From the sequence record MZ475891.1: a stretch of 64,000 nt of DNA. One strand, written 5' to 3'. This document shows positions 1,051 to 13,128 of the stretch, piece by piece (positions within the stretch are counted from its first letter, which is position 1; each line of letters starts with the position of its first letter). Below the pieces are notes generated by a model. The model searched no databases. It was not told the DNA's origin and saw only the letters and a list, made by a program, of their open reading frames with translations. Position numbers and translations under genes: made by a program.

Positions 1051-1647
1051 TTAGTACAGGATTACAGTGCCAGACTCAGGATTGTCGAAGGTAATCGTCA
1101 ACTGGCTGGTGCTGTCATGCACGATAGACTTAGGCTGTACTTCATTCGCACCTTGATAGATACGCACCGCAGGGTTATAACCGAGATTATGCACAACAAC
1201 CCACGTAGCCAGATTCTCATAAGATGCAGTGAATGCAACGGTAGGAGTAGGCAGACCTGACTCAACGCCAGACAACAGTACAGCAGTACCAGCCACGGCA
1301 GAAGGGAAGAGGACAACGATGTTGTTAGCATCATCGGCGTGAATTGAAGACGGCTGTACCACGTCACCATTCTCATCGTAGCACTGTACGATAGGCGTAG
1401 CGGTATTCATCTTGTGGTTAATCTCCCAACGAGACGAAGCAGTAGGTTGCGAGTAGCGAACCATAGTCATCTGTTGAGTTAATGGAACCCAGACAGGAAC
1501 ATCTTCGATAGACACGCAGAACATCAGACGCTTGTCCATGAAGATAGCCATACCAGGCTTAGGGTTAAGAGGCCAGTCAGTCGCTACGTCAAACGCGAAG
1601 TTAGCAAGTGAGCCAAACTCTAAATCAAGAGTCCCTAGGACTTTCAT
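1051..1647 (-). CDS. Virion protein with two tandem W-x3-H beta modules
   Basis: WEINHKMNTATPIVQCYD...QP and WVVVHNLGYNPAVRIY...QP repeats; GGAG RBS. Confidence 0.65.
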   Translation of the reverse strand: MKVLGTLDLEFGSLANFAFDVATDWPLNPKPGMAIFMDKRLMFCVSIEDVPVWVPLTQQMTMVRYSQPTASSRWEINHKMNTATPIVQCYDENGDVVQPSSIHADDANNIVVLFPSAVAGTAVLLSGVESGLPTPTVAFTASYENLATWVVVHNLGYNPAVRIYQGANEVQPKSIVHDSTSQLTITFDNPESGTVILY

Positions 1648-1710: not shown

Positions 1711-3330
1711 TTACTCAGCCGGAGTGTAAGCGTTCGCACCAGTAACGAATGCGATTGCCACTTTCTTCTCGGTGGTCAGTTCAACACGCAGCGTGTTAGC
1801 GTCAACAAACACGACCTCATCAGGGATGATCTGATAGCCGGTATCGTCAACGACGGTAACGGTACCGTATTTGACGCCTGCATTGTGTGCGAAGGTGTGA
1901 GTGGTGTTGGCCACGTCACCGCTTGCAGTTTTGTCGTACTGGTACAGCTTAGCAGCAGAACCGCTTGAGCCAGCAGCAATCGCATCGTCAACATATTTCT
2001 TGCTGACAACAGACTCATCAACCAGCGCTTCGGTACCAGTCAGAGTAAGGGCTTCGACAGCGCCGCCTTCACCAGCGATGAAACCAGCGCTTTTTAAGGC
2101 GTCTTGGTCCACGATGATTTTGCTGTTGGTAGTGTCCTGTTTCAGGCCAGTACCCAGAGCAGCGCCTGCGATCTGCGCATAGCCAACACCACCGTCAGTG
2201 ATTGCCAGACCATCAGCAGTACGTGACAGAGTAGCACCGTCCAGCTTAACGCGAGTAGCACCAGCGTTATCTTCCAGGCCACCAGCAGCATCCAGCTTAG
2301 CAGTAACAGCGTTGCCAGTGATTTCGATACCAGCGCCAGTAACCACGTTAACGACGTTCGAAACTTTCTCCAAACCATTACCTGGGTTGAAGTCAGAAGC
2401 ACCACCGAAGGTAGTCCACTGAGTAGCGTCGAAGCGACGGTATTCTTTGATGCTCTTAACCCAAGTTACAGCACCACCAGCTTCGCTGTCTGCTGGGTTG
2501 AATACAACAACGAACGCAGTGCCATTGTAACGCACGATAGCGTTATCAACCAGGCCGCTGATAGTACCGAAGTTCGGGTTAACAGTGTCTGCATCGAGGA
2601 TGATATACTGCTTACCGTTCTCCAGCACAGGGTCGAGGGTGCCGTCAGTCTGAATGTCATCAGAATCGTGCAGCCAATCGATACCAGCGATAGCGTTGTC
2701 AATGTCGATCTTACGAGCGGCATCGTTCGCGTTGGCAGGCGCGGCCAGGTTGGTGATGGTGTTACCGTCAGCGTTCAGGTCACCAGTCAGAACACCAGCG
2801 CCTGCATCCAGCTTACCTGCCAGTGCAGTTTCGTTGGCATCAGCTTTGTTCTTGACTGCGGTGATCTGAGTCTGAATAGAAGAGGAAGCACCCTTCAAAT
2901 AGCCCAGTTCAGTTGCAGTAACATCGCTTGTTTCCAGAGTGCTGTCAGCGCCTGCAAACACAACGGCGTTTTCGGTCAGACCAGACAGTTTATCCTGCTT
3001 ACCACTGATAACGGTTTCAACGTGCTTCTTACTAACAGCAGCGTTATCTTCTGACGCGCTCTGGTCTGGACCAGACAGCAGCAGATCGGCAGTCATGGCT
3101 ACGGTACCGTCAGCGAGGATAACACCCTCTACAGAACCACCGCCTTCACCCAGCTCTTTGATTGCCGTACCGTCGAAGTATTTATACTTCTTGTCTGTGG
3201 TGTTATACCACATGCGCCCTTCCTGTGCGGCAACCAAGTCACCTACAGCAGGGTCAGCGGCAAGTTGTTCCGGGCGGAAGTTCTTGAGCTGGGCACCTAA
3301 CATCAGTTCAATATTACCAGTACGCATCAT
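1711..3330 (-). CDS. Putative fibre/whisker protein
   Basis: 539 aa; phage-fibre motifs (EGRMWYNTTDKKYKYFDG, AVSKKHVE/VVSKKYVD, NLAAPANANDAARKIDID), Gly-periodic segment, C-terminal H-x-x-G module. Confidence 0.65.
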   Translation of the reverse strand: MMRTGNIELMLGAQLKNFRPEQLAADPAVGDLVAAQEGRMWYNTTDKKYKYFDGTAIKELGEGGGSVEGVILADGTVAMTADLLLSGPDQSASEDNAAVSKKHVETVISGKQDKLSGLTENAVVFAGADSTLETSDVTATELGYLKGASSSIQTQITAVKNKADANETALAGKLDAGAGVLTGDLNADGNTITNLAAPANANDAARKIDIDNAIAGIDWLHDSDDIQTDGTLDPVLENGKQYIILDADTVNPNFGTISGLVDNAIVRYNGTAFVVVFNPADSEAGGAVTWVKSIKEYRRFDATQWTTFGGASDFNPGNGLEKVSNVVNVVTGAGIEITGNAVTAKLDAAGGLEDNAGATRVKLDGATLSRTADGLAITDGGVGYAQIAGAALGTGLKQDTTNSKIIVDQDALKSAGFIAGEGGAVEALTLTGTEALVDESVVSKKYVDDAIAAGSSGSAAKLYQYDKTASGDVANTTHTFAHNAGVKYGTVTVVDDTGYQIIPDEVVFVDANTLRVELTTEKKVAIAFVTGANAYTPAE

Positions 3331-3351
3331 GTTCTCCTAGTGCGTGGGGGA

Positions 3352-4095
3352 TTAGAAAAACTGACCGTCACATTCACCAAGACTGCAACGCAGTTCCTGG
3401 TATGCAGCGATCCGTTGTTCAATTACATTAATAAACTTGTCATCAATATCATACTTCACACGAAGCGGAGCATCATATCCTTCTAAGAGGCCGTGACGTC
3501 GATACGCATCTGCACGGAGCAGCGGTGCGCTAACGTGAGCACGTTCCATAATGCTTAAATCTATCTTATCGGCATAGATGAACGGCCGCTCTCGTTTACA
3601 CAGAAGGTAATCGATCTCGTGTAAATTAAAGAGTGTGAAATTCATATAGCCAATAATGAACTCCGCAATCAAACGAAAACTATCTGCCATATCTGCACTC
3701 AGATTGTGAGCGAGTATGGGTTCTATGTGTGGTTGCAGTTCAGTACGCATGTCGTACCAAGCTTCACACAGAACAGCAGGGAAGTCTTCAGGGTGAGCGG
3801 CCATAAGACCCATCACCCCTTTCTCCATATCTGCGAATGAGCTTAAAAGATTAGCGGTATCTTCAGGTGTTTCAATACCGCGACCCGTTGAAATGAACTG
3901 GCATTCAATTTCTCTCAACCAAGACTCGGACGCAGATAGGTATTGGAGAAGTGTCTCCCGCGCGCCAGCCGAAAACTCATGTCGGTCAGACTCAAGAGCC
4001 TGGTCCAACAAGAAGGCTTTAGCTTTGTAGAAGTCACTATAGCGTTCAGCGGTAAAGCGGCGGAACGCTATATTATTTCTCAAATAGCCTATCAT
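3352..4095 (-). CDS. Hypothetical soluble, mostly helical protein
   Basis: 247-aa ORF, 4-nt ATGA overlap with 4092..4595; no recognisable motif. Confidence 0.65.
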   Translation of the reverse strand: MIGYLRNNIAFRRFTAERYSDFYKAKAFLLDQALESDRHEFSAGARETLLQYLSASESWLREIECQFISTGRGIETPEDTANLLSSFADMEKGVMGLMAAHPEDFPAVLCEAWYDMRTELQPHIEPILAHNLSADMADSFRLIAEFIIGYMNFTLFNLHEIDYLLCKRERPFIYADKIDLSIMERAHVSAPLLRADAYRRHGLLEGYDAPLRVKYDIDDKFINVIEQRIAAYQELRCSLGECDGQFF

Positions 4096-4595
4096 CGCAA
4101 TTTCCTCAGATCATTCGACTCCGAAGCGCCTAAGCCGGGCGGAGCCGTATACAACGAACTGGAGAGGCTCTGCAATCTTAGCCCTAGCTTCTCTAGCTCA
4201 TGTTGATTACCATCAAGACGGCCTAACACTTCACGCATTAGGTCAACTGACTCCTGATGGTCACGGGACTGCTGTGATATAATCCGCTCAAACCGCTGAA
4301 CTGCTCGAAGAACTGAGTTCAATCCCTCTTTAAGATCTATATTGTCGACCTGCGTGGTTTCCGAAAACTCATTAAGGGCTTTGAGGACCTGCGCTAGTTC
4401 TGCTTCTAGTGACTCACCATCGAGCACTACGGGATTTGCTTCTAACTCGGCTAACTTCTCTTTGACCCGTTCATAGTCCTGCATGTCGGGAATGACTTTC
4501 CACCAGTAAAAGCCAGCTCCTGCAATGAGAAGAACTACTGACAGGACAGTTGCGAAGTTGGACGCAAGCACTTGTCCTAGTATTTCAGCCCACAT
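4092..4595 (-). CDS. Single-pass membrane protein with long coiled coil
   Basis: Hydrophobic FATVLSVVLLIAGAGFYWW near the N-terminus, then a heptad-rich acidic region. Confidence 0.65.
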   Translation of the reverse strand: MWAEILGQVLASNFATVLSVVLLIAGAGFYWWKVIPDMQDYERVKEKLAELEANPVVLDGESLEAELAQVLKALNEFSETTQVDNIDLKEGLNSVLRAVQRFERIISQQSRDHQESVDLMREVLGRLDGNQHELEKLGLRLQSLSSSLYTAPPGLGASESNDLRKLR

Positions 4596-4600
4596 TTCTT

Positions 4601-4885
4601 CTAACCCTTACAGGCTCGGTCATTGAGTTCGATAATAACTCGCTGTGCGCCTGGTTCGTTTACATCAGTGGTTTTATACGTGTGCGCCATCTTTGGCTTG
4701 AACTCTAAGCAGCTCTGTCCATATCGTCCGTCAACGACGCAGATAGCAGACAGGCAGCTCACATCTTCCTTGAGGATTCTCGATTCAGGATCTGGGTTGA
4801 CACTTCTAACGGCCGTGACAATAAGCGACACAAAGGCCAAGGCAATGCCAACCAAAATCACAATCTTGATTTTCCCGGCGTTCAT
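4601..4885 (-). CDS. Small membrane-anchored protein with a four-Cys domain (probably periplasmic)
   Basis: KIK + IVILVGIALAFVSLIVTAV N-terminal TM; CLSAIC...C...C in the C-terminal part. Confidence 0.65.
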   Translation of the reverse strand: MNAGKIKIVILVGIALAFVSLIVTAVRSVNPDPESRILKEDVSCLSAICVVDGRYGQSCLEFKPKMAHTYKTTDVNEPGAQRVIIELNDRACKG

Positions 4886-4916
4886 TTCGCTCTATCCAGT
4901 TGAATTTTGATAGGAG

Positions 4917-4924
4917 AAATTAGC
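4917..4924 (-). promoter_or_regulatory. Candidate late-promoter motif GCTAATTT
   Basis: Exact motif 31 nt upstream of the 4885 start; recurs 23-42 nt upstream of five other starts. Confidence 0.5.
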
Positions 4925-4946
4925 GACCGCGCAGATCCTAAACGGG

Positions 4947-5984
4947 TTATTCATCCAATACTCCACTTATATCTTGGAACATGTTTTTATACACAAGGCT
5001 GCCTCCAAGTTTGTCCAGTCGTTCAATCGAAACATACATATGCGGTTCTGTATTCACCTGTGCCCACTTGTTGTCTGTACTCAGGTTTTCCAAAGAAGGA
5101 ATAAGAACAATGCTCAAGTTATCAGAAGCCCTAACGAAAGCCACATCGATATGATTCTTATTGATTCGAATGATGTATCGGTTGATTGCGTCCAAACCAA
5201 CCGTGCGATTGAACTCTACATCACTGACTGTATTCACCAAACTAATAAGGAAGCCTTTCGGGCGACTGTTTATGTCGAACAGCGAACTCTTCAACTCAGA
5301 GAGGGTAGTAGCCGAGAAGTGTTGAACATCATGGCCCTTGCCTCTTAGACACTCACCCAAGATGCGACTCGATTCAATGTGCGCGGTGTTGTCATCACGC
5401 ATGATATAAATCGGTGCACCTCTGTTGTATGTGCGCTCGGTAATCTGCTGTATCAGGTCGCATGTAGGCTCCGTAACAGTAGACAGGCCTTTATACGCAA
5501 TAACAAACTTGTCCTTGTACAGGTCGTAAATCTCAGGCGGCATGTACTTCATGTAATCGTCATCGAGGCTCAAAATCAATCGAGGCTTAACGAGAGGAAT
5601 CACAAGCTGCACAGACCGCAGAGCGTCCTTGTACTCCGTGTCAGATAGCACACGGTTTATAGGTAGGTACTGCACAGTCACATACGGGTCAGAGCCTGTA
5701 TCGACGATAGAGCGAACGGCGGTGCTGCCTACATTAGGACCTGCGGAGAACTGAGTGATAATCATCAAACTGTTCTGGCCTAAGCCCCCGCCACCAGCAA
5801 CTGTAGTAGCACTACCATCTGCATTCTGGACTGTCTTAGAGCGCGTCAGCGTTGGCGCTACTCGGTCGTCTCGTCCGTTATCGGCATATACATTAACTGC
5901 GCAACACCAGAGACAGCTTCCAAGAACGTAAGCAGCAATACGTTGTCGGGATCTGCGTCTGCCGGGTTGACGGTGTCCGGCCAT
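4947..5984 (-). CDS. Periplasmic binding protein type-1 fold (COG2984/ABC substrate-binding-like) with putative signal peptide
   Basis: Motif order SLMIITQFS...VQYLPINR...KPRLILSLDDD...FVIAYKG...IYIMRDD...TTLSELK follows the family pattern as I recall it (VLILxSY...EYMDTKR...PDVIIAxDDxA...VVFxG...I.VLxD...TxxEW); N-terminus RRRSRQR-hydrophobic-VYA|D. Start uncertain (127-nt overlap with 5858..6682). Confidence 0.65.
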   Translation of the reverse strand: MAGHRQPGRRRSRQRIAAYVLGSCLWCCAVNVYADNGRDDRVAPTLTRSKTVQNADGSATTVAGGGGLGQNSLMIITQFSAGPNVGSTAVRSIVDTGSDPYVTVQYLPINRVLSDTEYKDALRSVQLVIPLVKPRLILSLDDDYMKYMPPEIYDLYKDKFVIAYKGLSTVTEPTCDLIQQITERTYNRGAPIYIMRDDNTAHIESSRILGECLRGKGHDVQHFSATTLSELKSSLFDINSRPKGFLISLVNTVSDVEFNRTVGLDAINRYIIRINKNHIDVAFVRASDNLSIVLIPSLENLSTDNKWAQVNTEPHMYVSIERLDKLGGSLVYKNMFQDISGVLDE

Positions 5985-6682
5985 AATACTTCTCCTTTCT
6001 CGTCAGTGACATAAGGAATACCGGCGCCTTTACCCAATCCATGACGTAAGGCCCATACGGTGTCGGCATTCTCTTGAACGAACACAAGACCATGTACCTG
6101 TGCTTTATCCCCTGTCTGCTCAAGCGCTGTCACACGACTATCGAGTAACTGCGTTTGCGATTGGAGAGCACGAATCGATGCAAGGTTGGAGTTAACACGC
6201 GTGTTCATGTTGTTGAACATGGTGAAGAAGCTGTTGTTCATCGCAGTACGGACGCTGTCCGTGTACGACTTAGGAATCAGCTCATTGCTGTCAAACGTTG
6301 TTGCGCCTGGTCGAACGAATACCTTACCTTGAAGCGTACCGCCGCTTGCACTGATGATCTGAGGTGCAGGCAGATCAGCTGCGTCCCAAGTCTGAACAGT
6401 GTTCATCACAGTAGCGTAGTCCGTTTCCTCCTGCCACGTATTCTTGTACGGGCTGGTGGCTGTTTTAGACTTGCGGCGTAACACTTTCTTGTAGCTGGCG
6501 TTGGCGCCATCAGCAATGATCCAGAGACCGTTCAGAGGGAATGTATGCGTAACAGGTTCAGCAAACGCCAGTATGATAACGACGTCCGCTCCTACCTTAT
6601 ACACAATATCATTCGACGCCGAAAGTCCCTGCTGTTGCGCAAGGCTTACGAGCGTGTCCACATAGTTAGTCAACTGGCTCAT
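5858..6682 (-). CDS. Fibre-associated protein (coiled coil plus C-terminal W-x3-H-x-L-G module)
   Basis: LIPKSYTD motif, coiled coil ending LDSRVTALE, then WALRHGLG...VTDEKGEVLWP. Confidence 0.65.
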   Translation of the reverse strand: MSQLTNYVDTLVSLAQQQGLSASNDIVYKVGADVVIILAFAEPVTHTFPLNGLWIIADGANASYKKVLRRKSKTATSPYKNTWQEETDYATVMNTVQTWDAADLPAPQIISASGGTLQGKVFVRPGATTFDSNELIPKSYTDSVRTAMNNSFFTMFNNMNTRVNSNLASIRALQSQTQLLDSRVTALEQTGDKAQVHGLVFVQENADTVWALRHGLGKGAGIPYVTDEKGEVLWPDTVNPADADPDNVLLLTFLEAVSGVAQLMYMPITDETTE

Positions 6683-7142
6683 CCGAAACTCCTAAGGTTT
6701 TTAGAATTGAAGAACTTCTATCGGAGAAGGCTTTTGCAATTGACAGAGCAGCAGCCTTATCGATAACGATTGTGCTGATAACGCCTTTGGTGTTGCATAC
6801 GATTGTTTGAGGAGCGTAGTCAACACAAGCTAAGGCGAATAGCAGATGATTACCGAGTTCACCGCTGATACAAACGTCTACGTCGAGGTCAGGCACGTAA
6901 ACGTTCTGGTTAATCTCAGAAATAAACTGCGCCAGCGCAACGGGATCAAACTTAGGAGGCGCTGTATCGTATTCCGCAATCAAGTCAATCTGTTTGGTTG
7001 CGGGATCGTATTCAAATGCGTTAATGTCCGAGATGATACGACCAAAGAGTTCGTTGCTTACTTCAATGCAATACTCATCAGACTTCTCACGGACGCGACC
7101 AACTACCTTGTTAGTCGCTGGGTTGATACGAATGATTGGCAT
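6666..7142 (-). CDS. Putative tail-fibre assembly/chaperone-like protein
   Basis: 158 aa, adjacent to a collagen fibre gene; acidic; position-based call only. Confidence 0.4.
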   Translation of the reverse strand: MPIIRINPATNKVVGRVREKSDEYCIEVSNELFGRIISDINAFEYDPATKQIDLIAEYDTAPPKFDPVALAQFISEINQNVYVPDLDVDVCISGELGNHLLFALACVDYAPQTIVCNTKGVISTIVIDKAAALSIAKAFSDRSSSILKTLGVSDEPVD

Positions 7143-7144
7143 AA

Positions 7145-7966
7145 TTAGTCGCCCTCTGCACTATACCAGAAGTCCCAGCCGACAACGTTTGTGCCAGTAG
7201 ACTTAATGGTGAAGCCACCCAACAGGGCGTTCTCGTTCATCGCACTTGTACCATCCAGATTATATAGCTGGAAGGTCCGAGATTGATTGGTTGCAGTATT
7301 GACGAACGTGATTTGCACAGACACACAGCGGTTGATGAACGGGCTGTTGAAGATAACGTTAATCGTATCAGTAGTGGATGTATTCACCACACGACCAAAG
7401 TTCTTCGTGTAACCAGTGTTCAGATCGCGGTCGCTACCAATCCATGCGTTAGGAATAGGCTGACCTGTGATAGGGTCAAGCGCTTGTGCTACGAGATACT
7501 CATTGATAGCAGCATCACGTCCTGCATTACCAGTAGGACCAGTTGGGCCTGTAGGACCCACACCGCCTGTGTTACCTGTAGCGCCGACAGGGCCTGTGTT
7601 ACCAGTAGGACCTTGACGGCCACGCTGACCACGAGGGCCAGGACAACCGTCTTCACCATCAGCACCATCACGACCATCAGCACCAGGCAGACCACGTAGA
7701 CCGTCTTTACCCTGCTTGCCTTCCTTGCCTGACTTCAACTGGTCGGCAGTAGGCAGACCAGGCACGGTGCTCTGACTACCGTCTGGCCATACAATAGTAA
7801 GCGTACCACTCACTGGGTCGAACTGTACGCCTTGTGATCCCGGAATGTTAGCTGCCTCTGTCGGGTCAATAAACGCAACAGAGTTCAGCGTTTGTTTGCC
7901 GAGAACTTTACCGACAGGAAATGCACCGCCATCGATTAGTCCCGGACTTATTTTCTGCAAAGACAT
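7145..7966 (-). CDS. Collagen-like fibre protein (24 Gly-X-Y triplets) with C-terminal beta domain
   Basis: GKEGKQ...GNAGRD uninterrupted triplets preceded by the FD..G.L....G....GLPT cap. Confidence 0.85.
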   Translation of the reverse strand: MSLQKISPGLIDGGAFPVGKVLGKQTLNSVAFIDPTEAANIPGSQGVQFDPVSGTLTIVWPDGSQSTVPGLPTADQLKSGKEGKQGKDGLRGLPGADGRDGADGEDGCPGPRGQRGRQGPTGNTGPVGATGNTGGVGPTGPTGPTGNAGRDAAINEYLVAQALDPITGQPIPNAWIGSDRDLNTGYTKNFGRVVNTSTTDTINVIFNSPFINRCVSVQITFVNTATNQSRTFQLYNLDGTSAMNENALLGGFTIKSTGTNVVGWDFWYSAEGD

Positions 7967-8189: not shown

Positions 8190-11063
8190 TTAGATTTCGT
8201 CAGGTTCCCAACACAGAATAGGACGGCGATACACTTGGAATACGCCAGTAGGTGCGTAGCTTGAGCTAAGGTATTCTTTAGCGTTTGTACTGAGGCTACG
8301 TTCTGACGTAAGCAACTGTTGCCTGTTGTGCGTCCACTGACAACGACCACAAGACTCTGCTTCGATACCTGCATCTGAATCCCAACCAGGCACGTCGAAT
8401 GTTTTGTTCCATCCGTTGAAGTGGTGAGTAGACACCGCTCCGTTGCCTGTTGCACACAGCACCATATACTGGTAGTCAGACTCGAAGTAGATAGGCACGT
8501 TACGGCCTGTAGGGATAGAAGGACCGTTAGCGTTATACGTCAACTGCCAACCAGTACGGTCTGCTGAGCCTGTAGACATGAACAACGGTCTACGGATAAT
8601 CATCATGATACCGTTCTGCGTTCCGTTGTCGCTAGTCTTAGTGCAGTACGCATTACAGCGCAGCGCACGGTCAACAGTGAACAACGTACTGTTGGAGAAG
8701 TCAGCATTGTACAGGTTAGCAGCCCACTGAGGTAAGTTAGCAGCTTCTGGTACAATGAAGTGGCGCTCTGCCAGTTCCAGATCACCGTAGCGGTCATAAG
8801 CAAACACGATATACTCATAGCCTGCATCGATCTGAATGTTGTGACCTTGAGAACCCACACCAGTCCACTTCCAAACAATCTGCCAGTCGTTAGTATCACG
8901 TCCAGGCGTATCGTTTATCAGGCCGTACTTGCGTTCGTATATCTGCCACACGCGAGAGCCACCAGTCGCAGCAAAGTACAAGCTGCCTGGATTAGAGCGG
9001 TCACCACCACAACGAGTAAGATGGTCAGGGCCTGCTTCGTTGTAAGCACTGGCTCCGCCTACACCGTCAAACATTTCCCAGTTCATCATCAAGTGAGAGG
9101 TGCACAACTCATTTGGTCCGCTATCATCCGTTGTCGTAACAAGATATTCGTACTGGTCAGCAAACGGATAGTAGACAGTCTCTGTTCCTGCCATAGCAAC
9201 ACGACGAACCCAATCGTGTGACTGCACTTTAGGTACAGGGAAGCAAGGGTTAGTCACAGACACGACGAAACTTTTAGTCTCGTACATCGGCAGCTTTTTG
9301 AAGCGGTTATCACGAATCGTTACCGTGTGCTTCATGCCGTAAGTCTGTGCACCGTCCATACCGCCTAGCACTTTGTAGTAGCTGAGATGCGCACTCTTGG
9401 TGCTCTCGTATAGCCCCGTGATGCCAAGCGACATGGCGCTGTTACGGTCAGTACCACAGCAATACTGATTGCCGTAGCTGTCATACGCGAAGCCCACAGA
9501 GAAGTAGCTATCAGGGTCAGACGACTGAGATCCGTAGTACATCTCAGTAGGCGCATTGCCCTCACCAACACCAGGCAGGCCAAAGCAGCAATAGCAACCG
9601 CGATACTGATACTGTCCGCCTTCGTACACGCGACGAGAAGCACCTATGCGATACATAGCACCAGCAAGTCCGCCTTGAGTACGGTTAACGTTCGCCGTGT
9701 CATAGGAAACGACATAAACAAAGTGGTCGGCGCCAATCGAGTTCAGGAACGCAGCCATGTTAGCAGCATTCGTTGTTCCTGGTGCAGTACCTTCGGCCGA
9801 AACGTGAATGTCATACGCTCTGCGATCTACGAGCACTTGGTCGGACTTGCGAATCTTGTACACGTTGAAGCCGCGAGAATCTCGGTAGTACACGCCATTC
9901 ACATACGTGTAACCAACATCGCCTGTGTCAAGCGTGCGCTGATAACCTACGATGTGGCTGAACACGCTACTACGCGCTTGCAGACTCGCACCGTTATCGT
10001 TCGACCAGTTGACAGATACATCACCAGCAGCCATACGCGCAGCCCAATCATCAGGCTTGTATGGGTAAGTGGTCACGTCAAAGTTAACGCCATACGCACT
10101 GCCTATTTCTACGCAGCACGGGTCACGATAGATGATCTCTGGGTCAAGAATAACATCGTCAGGAATATCGACTTGACCACAGTACATCTGACGCCACACA
10201 CCAGCTTGACCGCCGATAGAACCCGGGCCAGCAGCACCTGCGCCAGAGTTGAACTGGTAAGCAGCAGACGCACGGTAGTTCTTTTGGTTGCTTAACTGTG
10301 GAACGTTCAGCCAGCCTACGTGGTCACCAAAAGCATTGATGGACTTAGAACGCGCAGCCTGAGTAGCGACAACGTTAGCAGCACCATTGCTTGTGATACC
10401 AAGCGGACTAAAGATAGCGTTGAAGTTAACGTTACCCTCGTACGGACCTTTCTGGAGTACAATCAAGCTGACGCCGTTACGGTGTGCTTCACGCAAGGCA
10501 TTAAGCATCGCAGTAGGCATCGACTGACCGCTAGACGACAGCAGCAACATAACGCAGGACCATTGCTGGAAATACTTGTAGGTTCCGTCGTAACCGTAAG
10601 CACCAGCATTGATTTCATCCCACGTATGAGACAGCATATCAAGAGGCATACGCTCAAGATAGTGAACAAGCTGTCCCCATGACTCCATTGCAGATTCATC
10701 ATCCACAGAAGCGCCATCACTAATGACCAGCATCGTCGAGCCAGCAGTGATGTTAGAGTTATATGCACGCTCGGTCAGGAACTGGCGCAGCGCACCCATG
10801 TTGTTAATTGTGGTATTGCGATAGTTACCCATCCAGCCGTAGCCTTCAGTAACCATTGGACTATCACTGCGAATGAAGCTACCGTTCATATACACAGAAC
10901 CGTAACCGCAAACATACGCGAGAGCATGACCATCAACAACAAAGGATGTGTAGCGATTGCTATCAACGCCCATCGCATCAACAGCAGCTACGGAGCCATC
11001 ACCTACACCGCCAGTAAAGACAGGAGTAATGCCTCGTGCATACAAGCAACTTTGTTGCAGCAT
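8190..11063 (-). CDS. Large virion/fibre protein with ILEI (PANDER-like) domain
   Basis: GFNVYKI...RAYD...AAFLNSIGADHFVYVVSYD...IGA...YRGCYCCFG..G.G matches the ILEI pattern (~9490-9875); three C-terminal W...Y.Y.V repeats. Confidence 0.7.
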   Translation of the reverse strand: MLQQSCLYARGITPVFTGGVGDGSVAAVDAMGVDSNRYTSFVVDGHALAYVCGYGSVYMNGSFIRSDSPMVTEGYGWMGNYRNTTINNMGALRQFLTERAYNSNITAGSTMLVISDGASVDDESAMESWGQLVHYLERMPLDMLSHTWDEINAGAYGYDGTYKYFQQWSCVMLLLSSSGQSMPTAMLNALREAHRNGVSLIVLQKGPYEGNVNFNAIFSPLGITSNGAANVVATQAARSKSINAFGDHVGWLNVPQLSNQKNYRASAAYQFNSGAGAAGPGSIGGQAGVWRQMYCGQVDIPDDVILDPEIIYRDPCCVEIGSAYGVNFDVTTYPYKPDDWAARMAAGDVSVNWSNDNGASLQARSSVFSHIVGYQRTLDTGDVGYTYVNGVYYRDSRGFNVYKIRKSDQVLVDRRAYDIHVSAEGTAPGTTNAANMAAFLNSIGADHFVYVVSYDTANVNRTQGGLAGAMYRIGASRRVYEGGQYQYRGCYCCFGLPGVGEGNAPTEMYYGSQSSDPDSYFSVGFAYDSYGNQYCCGTDRNSAMSLGITGLYESTKSAHLSYYKVLGGMDGAQTYGMKHTVTIRDNRFKKLPMYETKSFVVSVTNPCFPVPKVQSHDWVRRVAMAGTETVYYPFADQYEYLVTTTDDSGPNELCTSHLMMNWEMFDGVGGASAYNEAGPDHLTRCGGDRSNPGSLYFAATGGSRVWQIYERKYGLINDTPGRDTNDWQIVWKWTGVGSQGHNIQIDAGYEYIVFAYDRYGDLELAERHFIVPEAANLPQWAANLYNADFSNSTLFTVDRALRCNAYCTKTSDNGTQNGIMMIIRRPLFMSTGSADRTGWQLTYNANGPSIPTGRNVPIYFESDYQYMVLCATGNGAVSTHHFNGWNKTFDVPGWDSDAGIEAESCGRCQWTHNRQQLLTSERSLSTNAKEYLSSSYAPTGVFQVYRRPILCWEPDEI

Positions 11064-11106: not shown

Positions 11107-13128
11107 TTAGCCAAATACAATCTCAGTGATTGCAAGATACGTCACATCGTTTGAGTCGCCACGGTCACCAGAACCGTAGGCCATCAACCAAATCTCTTCA
11201 CCTGCAGGGATGTTAGTGTCGAATGTGATACGTTGCAGAACGTTAGCGCTTGAGTAGACACGTTGCGCTGCACCAGCACCTGCATAACGTTCGTAGATGG
11301 ACATGTCGTGCCAGCTACCGTTATTACCATCAAACACCCAATCAAATGTGATTCGCTTGATAGGTCGAGTGAAGAAGTTATTCCACTTGAACCAACCATT
11401 CGAGCCACCCCAGAAGTTCATATAGCTGCCGTCCCAAACTTTCAGGTTCTCAATGCCACCGCTGACTGTACGACCGCCAGTCTGTGTGAATGCATAGCAG
11501 TACCATGGGAATGGATCTGAATCAGGCGGCTGTGAGTTGCCACCAGCAACTGTGATGCAGCGATACGGAACTGTGAAGTCTCTGACGTTAATGTGCGGAG
11601 GCTGAATCGGACAGTACACATAGTAAGACCAGTCACACCCGATAGGGCCTGTAACGCGCACTGTGATCTCAGAACGCAGAACATGCTCAGGGTATTTCCA
11701 GAACTCAAGTGTACCAACAGCGCCTGCTACGACAATCGACGTATCAAGCAGATTCATATCACGGTCAAACACCTCGAACTTGGTGTCGAATGAGTTAGCA
11801 ACGCATACGACCAGCTCTGCTCGGATATCTGTCTGTGTGCCTAACGCAAAATTATCTTCTGTGGTTGGATGACCGGCAGAGTAAACGCTGTAGCTTTGGC
11901 ACGGATGCATGAACTCACGCGCACCACGCTCCGAAGGACAATAAAGGCTGTAGAAGAAGCTGTCGAGTGATTCAGCGTTTCCAAAGTCTTTAGATACCAC
12001 GCGCACCATAATGTCACACGCGATGTTCTTAGGGTCAAAGTAGAAATACAGATAACCCTCAAGTGTCTTCGCATCAAGCGTTGTTGCAATACGTCTACCG
12101 TTTTGATACACCTCAATGAAGTCGAGCGTTTCCCACGAGGTATAATCAAGGTACATCCAGCCTGCTGTCCAGCCCACAAAGTGATAATACTCGAACGCGT
12201 TAGCATTCTGAATACGCTCTGCAATAGGCCACACTGAGGCATGACACGGAGCTGGGAAGACTGGCGTGCCGATATAGTCAGGGTTGATAACGTCAGGGTA
12301 ATTGATAACGTCATACGCGGCTTGACTGTCGAGCGCTAACCCACCACGGTCAGAAGGTGCAGAAAGCAGAGGAGGATAAACCATCATGCTCCAGCCGTAA
12401 CCTTGAGTTGTGCGCACACGTATCATGATACGCATATCGGCAGCGTCAGGGTCAAACTGGAACTTGATGCGAGAACGTCCTGTTACTTTACCGCAAGATG
12501 AAGCTACGCGCACGCCCATGTGATAGACGTCAATGCTTGCACCAGCAGGAGCATACGAAGCAAAGTTAACCTCGACATAACCTTCAGTTGCAGGCAGAGC
12601 GTAGATCGTTTCAGTGATAACAGCACCACGACCGTGAGTAGATGCATAAGGCACGTTGGGGTTAGCATACGTGCCCAGACCTGCTCTCGATGCTACGCCT
12701 ACAGGGTCATAAGACTCAAGCGTCTTGATGCCTGGGCGATTGATACTGCGACCAGTTGGCGGTGCTGACGAGTTGACTACACCGAAGCCTGTACGACCCG
12801 CATCAGGCAAGTCGAAGCCTATTGGATAGCCTCCAAGAATCGTATAGCTCTCACGACCACCACTGCCTATACCGTTACCGGAGCCTTTGGTTGTTGACGT
12901 AGGGCCACCGCCACATGCACCTGTTTCGAGATTTGAACAGGGATCATCATACGTAGGGTCAAACGTGTCATCGATTAAATGCCAGCGCTTGCCCCACTGA
13001 TTACGCACGCTGAACTTCTCAGGTGTTAGAGGAGTCCAGTCACCTTCCTTGGTGCGAACGTACATGGGCGTATCGACACAATCAAGCCAACCGTTATTCG
13101 CAGCATTACGAACGCGAAAACGTGACAT
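11107..13128 (-). CDS. Virion protein with three tandem beta-sandwich repeats
   Basis: Three ~85-aa units with I.V.V/IRV and ending WSMMVYPP, FFYSLYCP, WSYYVYCP. Confidence 0.65.
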   Translation of the reverse strand: MSRFRVRNAANNGWLDCVDTPMYVRTKEGDWTPLTPEKFSVRNQWGKRWHLIDDTFDPTYDDPCSNLETGACGGGPTSTTKGSGNGIGSGGRESYTILGGYPIGFDLPDAGRTGFGVVNSSAPPTGRSINRPGIKTLESYDPVGVASRAGLGTYANPNVPYASTHGRGAVITETIYALPATEGYVEVNFASYAPAGASIDVYHMGVRVASSCGKVTGRSRIKFQFDPDAADMRIMIRVRTTQGYGWSMMVYPPLLSAPSDRGGLALDSQAAYDVINYPDVINPDYIGTPVFPAPCHASVWPIAERIQNANAFEYYHFVGWTAGWMYLDYTSWETLDFIEVYQNGRRIATTLDAKTLEGYLYFYFDPKNIACDIMVRVVSKDFGNAESLDSFFYSLYCPSERGAREFMHPCQSYSVYSAGHPTTEDNFALGTQTDIRAELVVCVANSFDTKFEVFDRDMNLLDTSIVVAGAVGTLEFWKYPEHVLRSEITVRVTGPIGCDWSYYVYCPIQPPHINVRDFTVPYRCITVAGGNSQPPDSDPFPWYCYAFTQTGGRTVSGGIENLKVWDGSYMNFWGGSNGWFKWNNFFTRPIKRITFDWVFDGNNGSWHDMSIYERYAGAGAAQRVYSSANVLQRITFDTNIPAGEEIWLMAYGSGDRGDSNDVTYLAITEIVFG

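Follow-up and report, generated by a model that had tools for sequence, protein, structure and literature searches.

The 64,000-nucleotide stretch analyzed here (hereafter, the window) belongs to sequence record MZ475891.1, the 264.7-kb genome of the Erwinia jumbo phage pEa_SNUABM_13, which matches window bases 3300–7200 at 100% identity; pEa_SNUABM_7 (genus Snuvirus) is 99.5% identical over the same bases. Record coordinates equal the window position plus 62000. The element in question is an open reading frame (ORF) of 345 amino acids on the minus strand (4947..5984), which an earlier note on this DNA had described as a periplasmic ligand-binding protein encoded inside the fiber locus of a jumbo phage. 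The ORF is present, and every motif quoted from it (a basic, then hydrophobic N-terminus and the strings SLMIITQFS, VQYLPINR, KPRLILSLDDD, FVIAYKG, IYIMRDD and TTLSELK) occurs in its translation. The annotation also bears out the locus: the gene lies within a long minus-strand run of structural genes in the tail-fiber region, with the baseplate/PAAR region, several 'tail fiber' genes and a collagen-repeat fiber gene upstream and a 539-aa virion protein (1711..3330), followed by a series of fiber-like genes, downstream. None of the genes in the surrounding region is broken. The phages of this group are the 'hairy' jumbo myoviruses, which include Y3, Yoloswag, Alexandra and Dickeya JA11/AD1 (PMC6143709). 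From comparative and structural analyses, we conclude that the gene very probably encodes an exported protein with a periplasmic-binding-protein fold whose signal peptide is overprinted on the neighboring gene.

A predicted start inside the upstream gene

The GenBank and RefSeq gene model covers only 4947..5765, which gives 272 aa from M74, and the phrog_31505 match likewise spans residues 74–345 only. Given this shorter annotation and the overlap of the longer frame with the upstream gene (5858..6682), the signal peptide could have been an artifact of choosing the longest ORF. We compared 14 lineages, namely the window, three Alexandravirus isolates and ten metagenomic contigs, whose core identity to the window runs from 79% down to 44%. 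The frame is open in all 14: it starts at a homologous Met, and a stretch that is first basic and then hydrophobic leads, by way of a variable linker, to the core. The ATG is present in every one of the 14, and the overlapped start codon is retained in about 20 lineages overall. The A of the ATG is the third base of an upstream-gene codon that itself varies (TTA, CTA, ATA or GTA); A-ending codons make up only ~16–17% of the local Leu, Ile and Val codons. The next codon of the upstream gene changes once from Trp to Cys, with the TG of the start retained, and Dickeya JA11 (L027, about position 1828; 25% identity) has a GTG exactly at the homologous start position. The Shine–Dalgarno-like site before the ATG is a strong one; its GGAGA is kept in Erwinia-type lineages and is weaker yet purine-rich in lineages L006, L009 and L011.

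Conservation of the C-terminus of the upstream protein automatically entails part of the amino-acid conservation in the second frame, and tests were for this reason restricted to features that the upstream frame does not impose. Stop avoidance was scored at sites where a T in the third position of an upstream codon, standing before AA, AG or GA, would make a stop in the second frame. Across the 14 lineages, T occupies 0 of 127 such at-risk positions, at which the bases vary among A, C and G, and T ends 31% of codons. Resampling of synonymous codons within each lineage gave a probability of 0.006–0.08 for an open frame and of 0.001–0.013 for an open frame with the ATG, the lineages not being independent of one another. 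The deep lineages (the window group, L006, L009, L011 and L018) share only 46–67% of synonymous third positions and so made their codon choices largely independently of one another. These tests detect purifying selection on the second frame beyond the constraint set by the first.

The frame is also kept past the overlap. Over the 14 lineages, the non-overlapped part of the linker holds 0 in-frame stops versus 27 and 22 in the other two frames, and the distance from the ATG to the core takes nine values from 150 to 228 nt, each a multiple of three. The alternative starts are also informative. In L011, no ATG, GTG or TTG was found between the upstream stop and the core, and in L009 the sole alternative start is a TTG where the core begins. 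No second start codon that would take in the conserved first strand exists in Yoloswag or L011; Yoloswag and pEa_SNUABM_5 lack a Met at the core start, the starts of pEa_SNUABM_5 all lie inside the core, and the annotated starts of Yoloswag (TTG) and pEa_SNUABM_5 remove the conserved first strand and helix. With the long form as a tblastn query, residues 1–345 align in Y3, AD1, Yoloswag and the Yersinia phage fHe-Yen9-02, and the record of the last (L025, OR620964.1, 1501..2469) already annotates the long, overlapping coding sequence.

The competing account of the gene is that its only product is the annotated 272-aa cytoplasmic protein starting at M74 and that the upstream extension is an untranslated by-product. 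It has on its side the GenBank/RefSeq annotation of nearly all relatives, the presence of M74 in 12 of 14 lineages, the automatic conservation of the alternative frame described above and a synonymous constraint that is only modestly raised over the overlap, where third-position identity is 0.62 versus 0.54 outside (Mann–Whitney p=0.23) and diversity drops only slightly. The third-position diversity dip over the hydrophobic region of the signal peptide is moreover equalled at one other place in the upstream gene, which, like the automatic conservation, counts against dual coding. We nevertheless regard the short product as highly improbable in light of the stop avoidance at 127 sites, the start codon retained while upstream codons change, the stop-free linker that keeps frame, the relatives without any start at the core and the far homologues that carry signal peptides. 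The comparisons show that the gene comprises 345 rather than 272 codons, with predicted translation from the ATG at 5984 in the other frame of the 3′ end of the upstream gene.

The linker reaches 26–95 nt past the upstream stop and differs in sequence in nearly every lineage, always keeping the frame. A semi-conserved G-(L/I/M)-x-x-N-(S/G)-L motif stands directly before the core.

Signal peptide and predicted export

We judged the signal peptide by rules only, with the predicted cleavage after residue 34 following from the −3/−1 rule. By this scoring, the N-terminus has the basic n-region, the uncharged h-region and the small −3/−1 residues of a Sec signal. Across the 14 lineages, the segment carries a net charge of +3 to +6 and an uncharged run of 15–23 residues, and V-x-A precedes Asp or Ser in most of them. 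These features, together with homology to relatives that have classical signal peptides, predict exit from the cytoplasm and support the reading of the first ~34 residues as a Sec-type signal peptide. The signal-peptide-like N-terminus to which the earlier note had pointed is conserved and, judging by the stop avoidance and the kept start, under selection. C102 and C139 of the core are invariant within the close family, an invariance that would suit an oxidizing compartment. Less favorable to a plain Sec signal are the h-region, which is only moderately hydrophobic (Kyte–Doolittle value about 2.0–2.5 over 10 residues) and rich in Cys, and a lipobox-like L-G-A/S-C within it, which makes lipoprotein processing possible and the type of processing uncertain. 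We set aside a Tat signal because a consistent twin-arginine motif beside the h-region is lacking and the signals of far relatives are short and of Sec type.

A profile search of 1.8 billion representatives returned 56 proteins at E≤1e-3, and every readable genomic context of the family is phage-like. Of the remote homologues, 23 have 13 or more residues ahead of the core, and a hydrophobic, signal-like start is seen in ~21 of these by eye and in 17 by a crude rule; one of the homologues, P0041, has a lipobox. P0039 (from L019) and P0041 (from L023, a 278-kb contig) are relatives at ~20% identity whose genes are ordered as in the window: a small protein, a collagen fiber, a ~160-aa protein, a ~270-aa fiber-like protein and the homologue of the 345-aa gene, followed by proteins of ~90–120, ~160–230, ~250 and ~550 aa. 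The signal peptide is non-overlapped in both L019 (4459–5367) and L023 (7001–7999), in which the overlap with the upstream gene amounts to 4 nt and 1 nt, respectively. Because far relatives carry non-overlapped signal peptides, we infer that export is ancestral to the family and that the overlap seen in phages of Erwinia, Dickeya and Yersinia is the derived state, in which the signal peptide overprints the 3′ end of the neighbor. The overlapped and non-overlapped arrangements, set side by side, show a signal peptide arising through overprinting.

The core resembles type-1 periplasmic binding proteins in fold

An AlphaFold2 model built on a 40-sequence alignment (A3) has a predicted local distance difference test (pLDDT) score of 86.5 and a predicted template modeling (pTM) score of 0.83; it replaced an earlier run on 23 close sequences, which had given a pLDDT of 67 and weak fold matches. 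Strands and helices alternate in the model, in an order that fits a path from lobe 1 to lobe 2, back to lobe 1 and again to lobe 2. Foldseek against the Protein Data Bank (PDB) returned 33 matches at E≤1e-3, nearly all of them of the type-1 periplasmic-binding-protein (PBP1) fold. The top match is 3lft, a COG2984 protein with bound Trp (E 2.7e-5; template modeling (TM) scores 0.53/0.51), followed by AmiC; the others include CD0873 (6hnj), LivK-like proteins, GGBP and LacI, as well as the flytrap domains of receptors (mGluR, CaSR, taste receptor and NMDA receptor). The model therefore has the two α/β lobes and the whole-length structural match of a PBP-like I fold, and the fold that the earlier note had proposed came through this check. 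On this model, the core is supported as a type-1 periplasmic-binding-protein fold, the likeness being at the level of fold only.

The motif series, by contrast, is not supported as characteristic of PBP1/COG2984 domains, as no Pfam, NCBIfam or PDB sequence-profile match was obtained for the protein, 40 family members or 20 remote homologues. This absence, found with the single protein and with profiles of the close (A2) and broad (A3) alignments, is one of several points that weigh against assigning the fold. At E≤1, Pfam matches neither the 345-aa protein nor any of the 40 family members; among the 20 remote homologues it finds no binding-protein family, the sole trace being a sub-threshold Peripla_BP_4 (E=0.033); and the PDB sequence searches returned neither 3lft nor 6hnj. 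The structural match is not tight either, with TM of only 0.4–0.54, a root-mean-square deviation of 6–11 Å and ~10% identity; the large deviation may reflect a difference in lobe opening, or hinge angle, between the model and its matches. A few caspase and racemase folds also appear among the matches, which implies that the lobes are generic α/β units. Searches of a viral fold library returned only uncharacterized homologues (Yoloswag, Dickeya JA13 and one further protein), and a PADLOC search gave nothing meaningful.

Eight core residues are conserved family-wide (Y33, P61, D124, E184, N202, H205, N216 and L253), and close relatives share the additional motifs DDD-Y and RDDN-x-x-H-x-E. In the model, most of the conserved polar residues (Y33, D124, E184, N202, H205 and N216) lie at the C-terminal ends of β strands, and we infer from it that they are placed where the cleft residues of this fold would lie. 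Acidic, His and Asn residues conserved in this way would be as much at home in an enzyme as in a binding site, which tells against a purely ligand-binding role.

A conserved four-gene block

The features of the locus are collected in Table 1. The 345-aa gene is a member of a four-gene block, together with the genes for the 94-aa, 167-aa and 247-aa proteins, whose order is fixed across a deep clade of 'hairy' jumbo phages. Homologues of these four genes and of the upstream gene stand in the same order in L006, L009, L019, Yoloswag, JA11 and fHe-Yen9-02; in L023, tblastn matches the upstream gene and two of the three downstream genes, with gp106 unmatched. The two adjacent membrane proteins co-occur with the 345-aa gene in every relative examined, so the synteny that the earlier note had proposed as a check holds. 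Within the block, the 345-aa gene and the 167-aa gene diverge fastest: compared with L003, the 345-aa gene is 64% identical and the upstream gene 81%, and compared with JA11, the corresponding values are 27% and 39%, with 51% for the 247-aa gene.

Table 1 Features of the fiber locus around the 345-codon gene (window coordinates)
Feature	Position	Strand	Remarks
Full-length gene, 345 aa	4947..5984	-	Predicted signal peptide, variable linker and two-lobed α/β domain
Predicted signal peptide, residues 1–34	5883..5984	-	Basic n-region of net charge +6; 19-residue uncharged stretch; V-x-A before Asp
Variable low-complexity linker, residues 35–73 (~39 residues)	5766..5882	-	Frame-keeping, stop-free
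Conserved core domain, residues 74–345 (272 residues)	4950..5765	-	PBP type-1-like fold (model)
Dual-coding stretch, 127 nt	5858..5984	-	Last 42 codons of the upstream gene; first 42 codons of the 345-aa gene in the other frame
Shine–Dalgarno-like AAGGAGA	5991..5997	-	7 nt before the ATG at 5984; inside Gly-Glu codons of the upstream gene
Upstream fiber-module gene, 274 aa	5858..6682	-	RefSeq 'HNH endonuclease' (phrog_24148); 3′ end carries the signal-peptide codons
94-aa single-pass membrane protein	4601..4885	-	N-terminal helix with Lys before it; predicted N-in; ~65-aa outer part
167-aa single-pass membrane protein (gp106)	4092..4595	-	13-residue N-terminus, one helix, coiled coil
247-aa soluble helical protein	3352..4095	-	PHROG label 'ABC transporter' (phrog_19088)
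Collagen-like fiber gene	7145..7966	-	Long Gly-X-Y run; Pfam Collagen in relatives; adjoins the four-gene block in all relatives
957-aa large ORF	8190..11063	-	Upstream, same operon; relatives give a weak PF15711 (ILEI) match
673-aa large ORF	11107..13128	-	Upstream, same operon

The four cysteines in the outer part of the 94-aa protein are kept at 34% identity, which suggests a disulfide-bonded periplasmic mini-domain. More positive charge on the coiled-coil side of the 167-aa protein predicts a C-in topology, with the coiled coil in the cytoplasm. We considered the two proteins as a spanin pair and set this assignment aside, as a lipobox is missing from the 94-aa protein and the predicted topology of the coiled-coil protein is C-in. 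The 247-aa protein, which has a homologue of 25% identity in L019, lacks a Walker A motif and a membrane segment and matches nothing in Pfam or NCBIfam; with neither a Walker A motif nor a family match, its 'ABC transporter' label is unsupported.

The product names of the window, read from the 99.5% identical RefSeq phage, include no permease, ABC ATPase or sensor kinase; the only 'kinase' or 'ATPase' labels are those of a thymidylate kinase and one unrelated ATPase, in agreement with what the earlier note had said of the window. The permease and ATPase genes that accompany an ABC importer are thus missing from the window annotation, and the 345-aa protein is not part of such an importer.

The 'HNH endonuclease' label of the upstream gene looks wrong. 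Its product has no Pfam match, its N-terminus resembles the tail proteins phrog_14098 and phrog_13325, and the gene lies between fiber genes and is conserved along with them. Its C-terminal part resembles that of the gene at 1051..1647, as gp103 matches the C-terminus of the L019 homologue in tblastn. Farther upstream, the two large ORFs may encode distal fiber or receptor-binding parts. A promoter and terminator scan gave output at chance level, and a literature search found no functional or proteomic data on the 345-aa gene.

Comparison with known systems

The best structural matches, with whole-length TM of 0.49–0.54, are proteins of COG2984/PF04392 (ABC_sub_bind), represented by 3lft of S. 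pneumoniae and 6hnj (CD0873) of C. difficile. They resemble the phage protein in size (~290 aa), in their two α/β lobes and in being exported or lipid-anchored, as is predicted for the phage protein. They differ from it in sequence, with ~10% identity and no profile match even at E≤1, so that membership in COG2984/PF04392 finds no significant profile match behind it; the phage gene, unlike theirs, stands without a permease or ATPase partner and is phage-encoded inside a fiber module. AmiC of the AmiC–AmiR system offers a second comparison. This second-best fold match works without a transporter, by protein contact, and the phage gene likewise stands beside membrane or regulatory partners and not beside a transporter. 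LuxP–LuxQ, TorT–TorS and ChvE–VirA are further cases in which type-1 binding proteins signal by contact, independently of transport. The phage block differs from the systems of AmiC, LuxP, TorT and ChvE in its putative partners, a helical cytoplasmic protein and two small proteins that each cross the membrane once, which have no recognizable kinase or regulator domain.

Phage-encoded exported proteins that act in the envelope of the infected cell include RI, Sp and Imm of T4, Llp of T5 and Sim of P1. Like the predicted product of the 345-aa gene, they are made by the phage and carry a signal peptide or a lipobox; they are, however, small accessory proteins without sequence or fold relation to it, whereas the gene described here is a core gene of ~300 aa. 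To our knowledge, lytic phages have rarely been found to place a receptor of the ligand-binding type in the host periplasm. The lambda Rz/Rz1 genes and the overlaps of phiX174 are overprinted, dual-frame phage genes. As in the present locus, one stretch is read in two frames for two proteins, and the second frame shows selection through its avoidance of stops. In contrast to those examples, only the signal peptide is overprinted here, and the overlap is derived, given its absence from L019 and L023.

The fold, exported phage proteins and overlapping genes are each already known. What is new is their combination: a sequence-orphan family with a binding-protein fold that is core and collinear in a jumbo-phage clade, its site in a fiber module with membrane partners, and a signal peptide in the alternative frame of a neighbor. 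The linkage across phages of Erwinia, Dickeya, Yersinia and other hosts points to an envelope-level function that jumbo-phage annotation, with its current labels of 'hypothetical', 'HNH endonuclease' and 'ABC transporter' for the block, has overlooked. Gene calling that prefers the longest non-overlapping frames hides export signals, and nearly all public records shorten this protein, so its compartment is mislabelled.

Proposed role and alternatives

In the mechanism that we propose, the inter-lobe cleft of the core domain would hold a ligand from the periplasm or envelope, and the domain would act by contact with its membrane-bound neighbors rather than by feeding a permease. The partners would jointly span the periplasm, the membrane and the cytoplasm, through the Cys-rich outer domain of the 94-aa protein, the coiled coil of the 167-aa protein and the soluble 247-aa protein. 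Taken as one statement, an exported protein of binding-protein fold that binds a ligand in its cleft and contacts its membrane neighbors seems to us reasonably probable. The narrower proposal of a ligand sensor acting through those neighbors is tentative, and we lean against it. A larger scheme can be drawn in which the four-gene block is an unrecognized envelope-spanning signaling device: the receptor would read a periplasmic cue, and the two membrane proteins would relay it to a partner in the cytoplasm that adjusts late events, for example the timing of lysis or the assembly of fibers, with the signal peptide reinvented by overprinting a fiber gene. This scheme is speculative and decidedly unlikely in its entirety.

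Other roles for an exported protein at this site have to be weighed. It might be a periplasmic superinfection-exclusion or receptor-masking protein that binds an envelope component used in adsorption or DNA entry and so shields the infected cell or the progeny, in the manner of T5 Llp, T4 Sp and Imm and P1 Sim. The export signal and the position among fiber genes fit such a role, since receptor-blocking genes of other phages are often sited there, and so does the fast evolution of the 345-aa gene and gp106 within the block. Typical exclusion genes are accessory, however, whereas this is a core, collinear gene in phages of Erwinia, Dickeya, Yersinia and AT-rich hosts, and it has no similarity to known exclusion proteins; we consider exclusion unlikely. 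To the idea of a periplasmic enzyme on a binding-protein-like scaffold, acting for instance on peptidoglycan, lipopolysaccharide or capsule, we give little credence: the conserved Asp, Glu, His and Asn residues at strand ends, including those of DDD-Y and RDDN-x-x-H-x-E in close relatives, and the weak fold matches to racemases and caspases would accommodate it, but binding proteins dominate the fold matches, and the sequence matches no catalytic family. The earlier note had also allowed for a scavenger, which would here be a substrate-binding protein delivering to an ABC permease of the host; in its favor, the top fold match, 3lft, is a COG2984 ABC substrate-binding protein. By sequence, however, the 345-aa protein belongs to no such family, the window annotation has no transporter genes, and the gene is strictly linked to three other phage genes, none of them for a transporter; scavenging appears extremely improbable.

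The block might instead control lysis timing as a holin/antiholin-like or spanin-like set, with the 345-aa protein as its periplasmic regulator. Its parts list, in which a cytoplasmic partner accompanies two single-pass proteins, one small with a periplasmic domain and the other with a coiled coil, recalls the T/RI/RIII system of T4. The predicted N-out/C-in topology of the coiled-coil protein is, however, not that of i-spanins, and the 94-aa protein lacks a lipobox. No PHROG family with a lysis function is matched by any of the four proteins, and a separate cluster of a lipoprotein and small proteins (gp080–083) lies elsewhere in the genome. A lysis role is, on these grounds, very unlikely, and the contact-acting binding protein outlined above remains the reading that we prefer.

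The gp080–083 cluster lies outside the window (NC_061451.1 46294..47679; L021 6295..7680) and comprises a 'lipoprotein' and three small proteins. It could be the spanin or holin set of the phage, in which case it would argue against a lysis role of the four-gene block.

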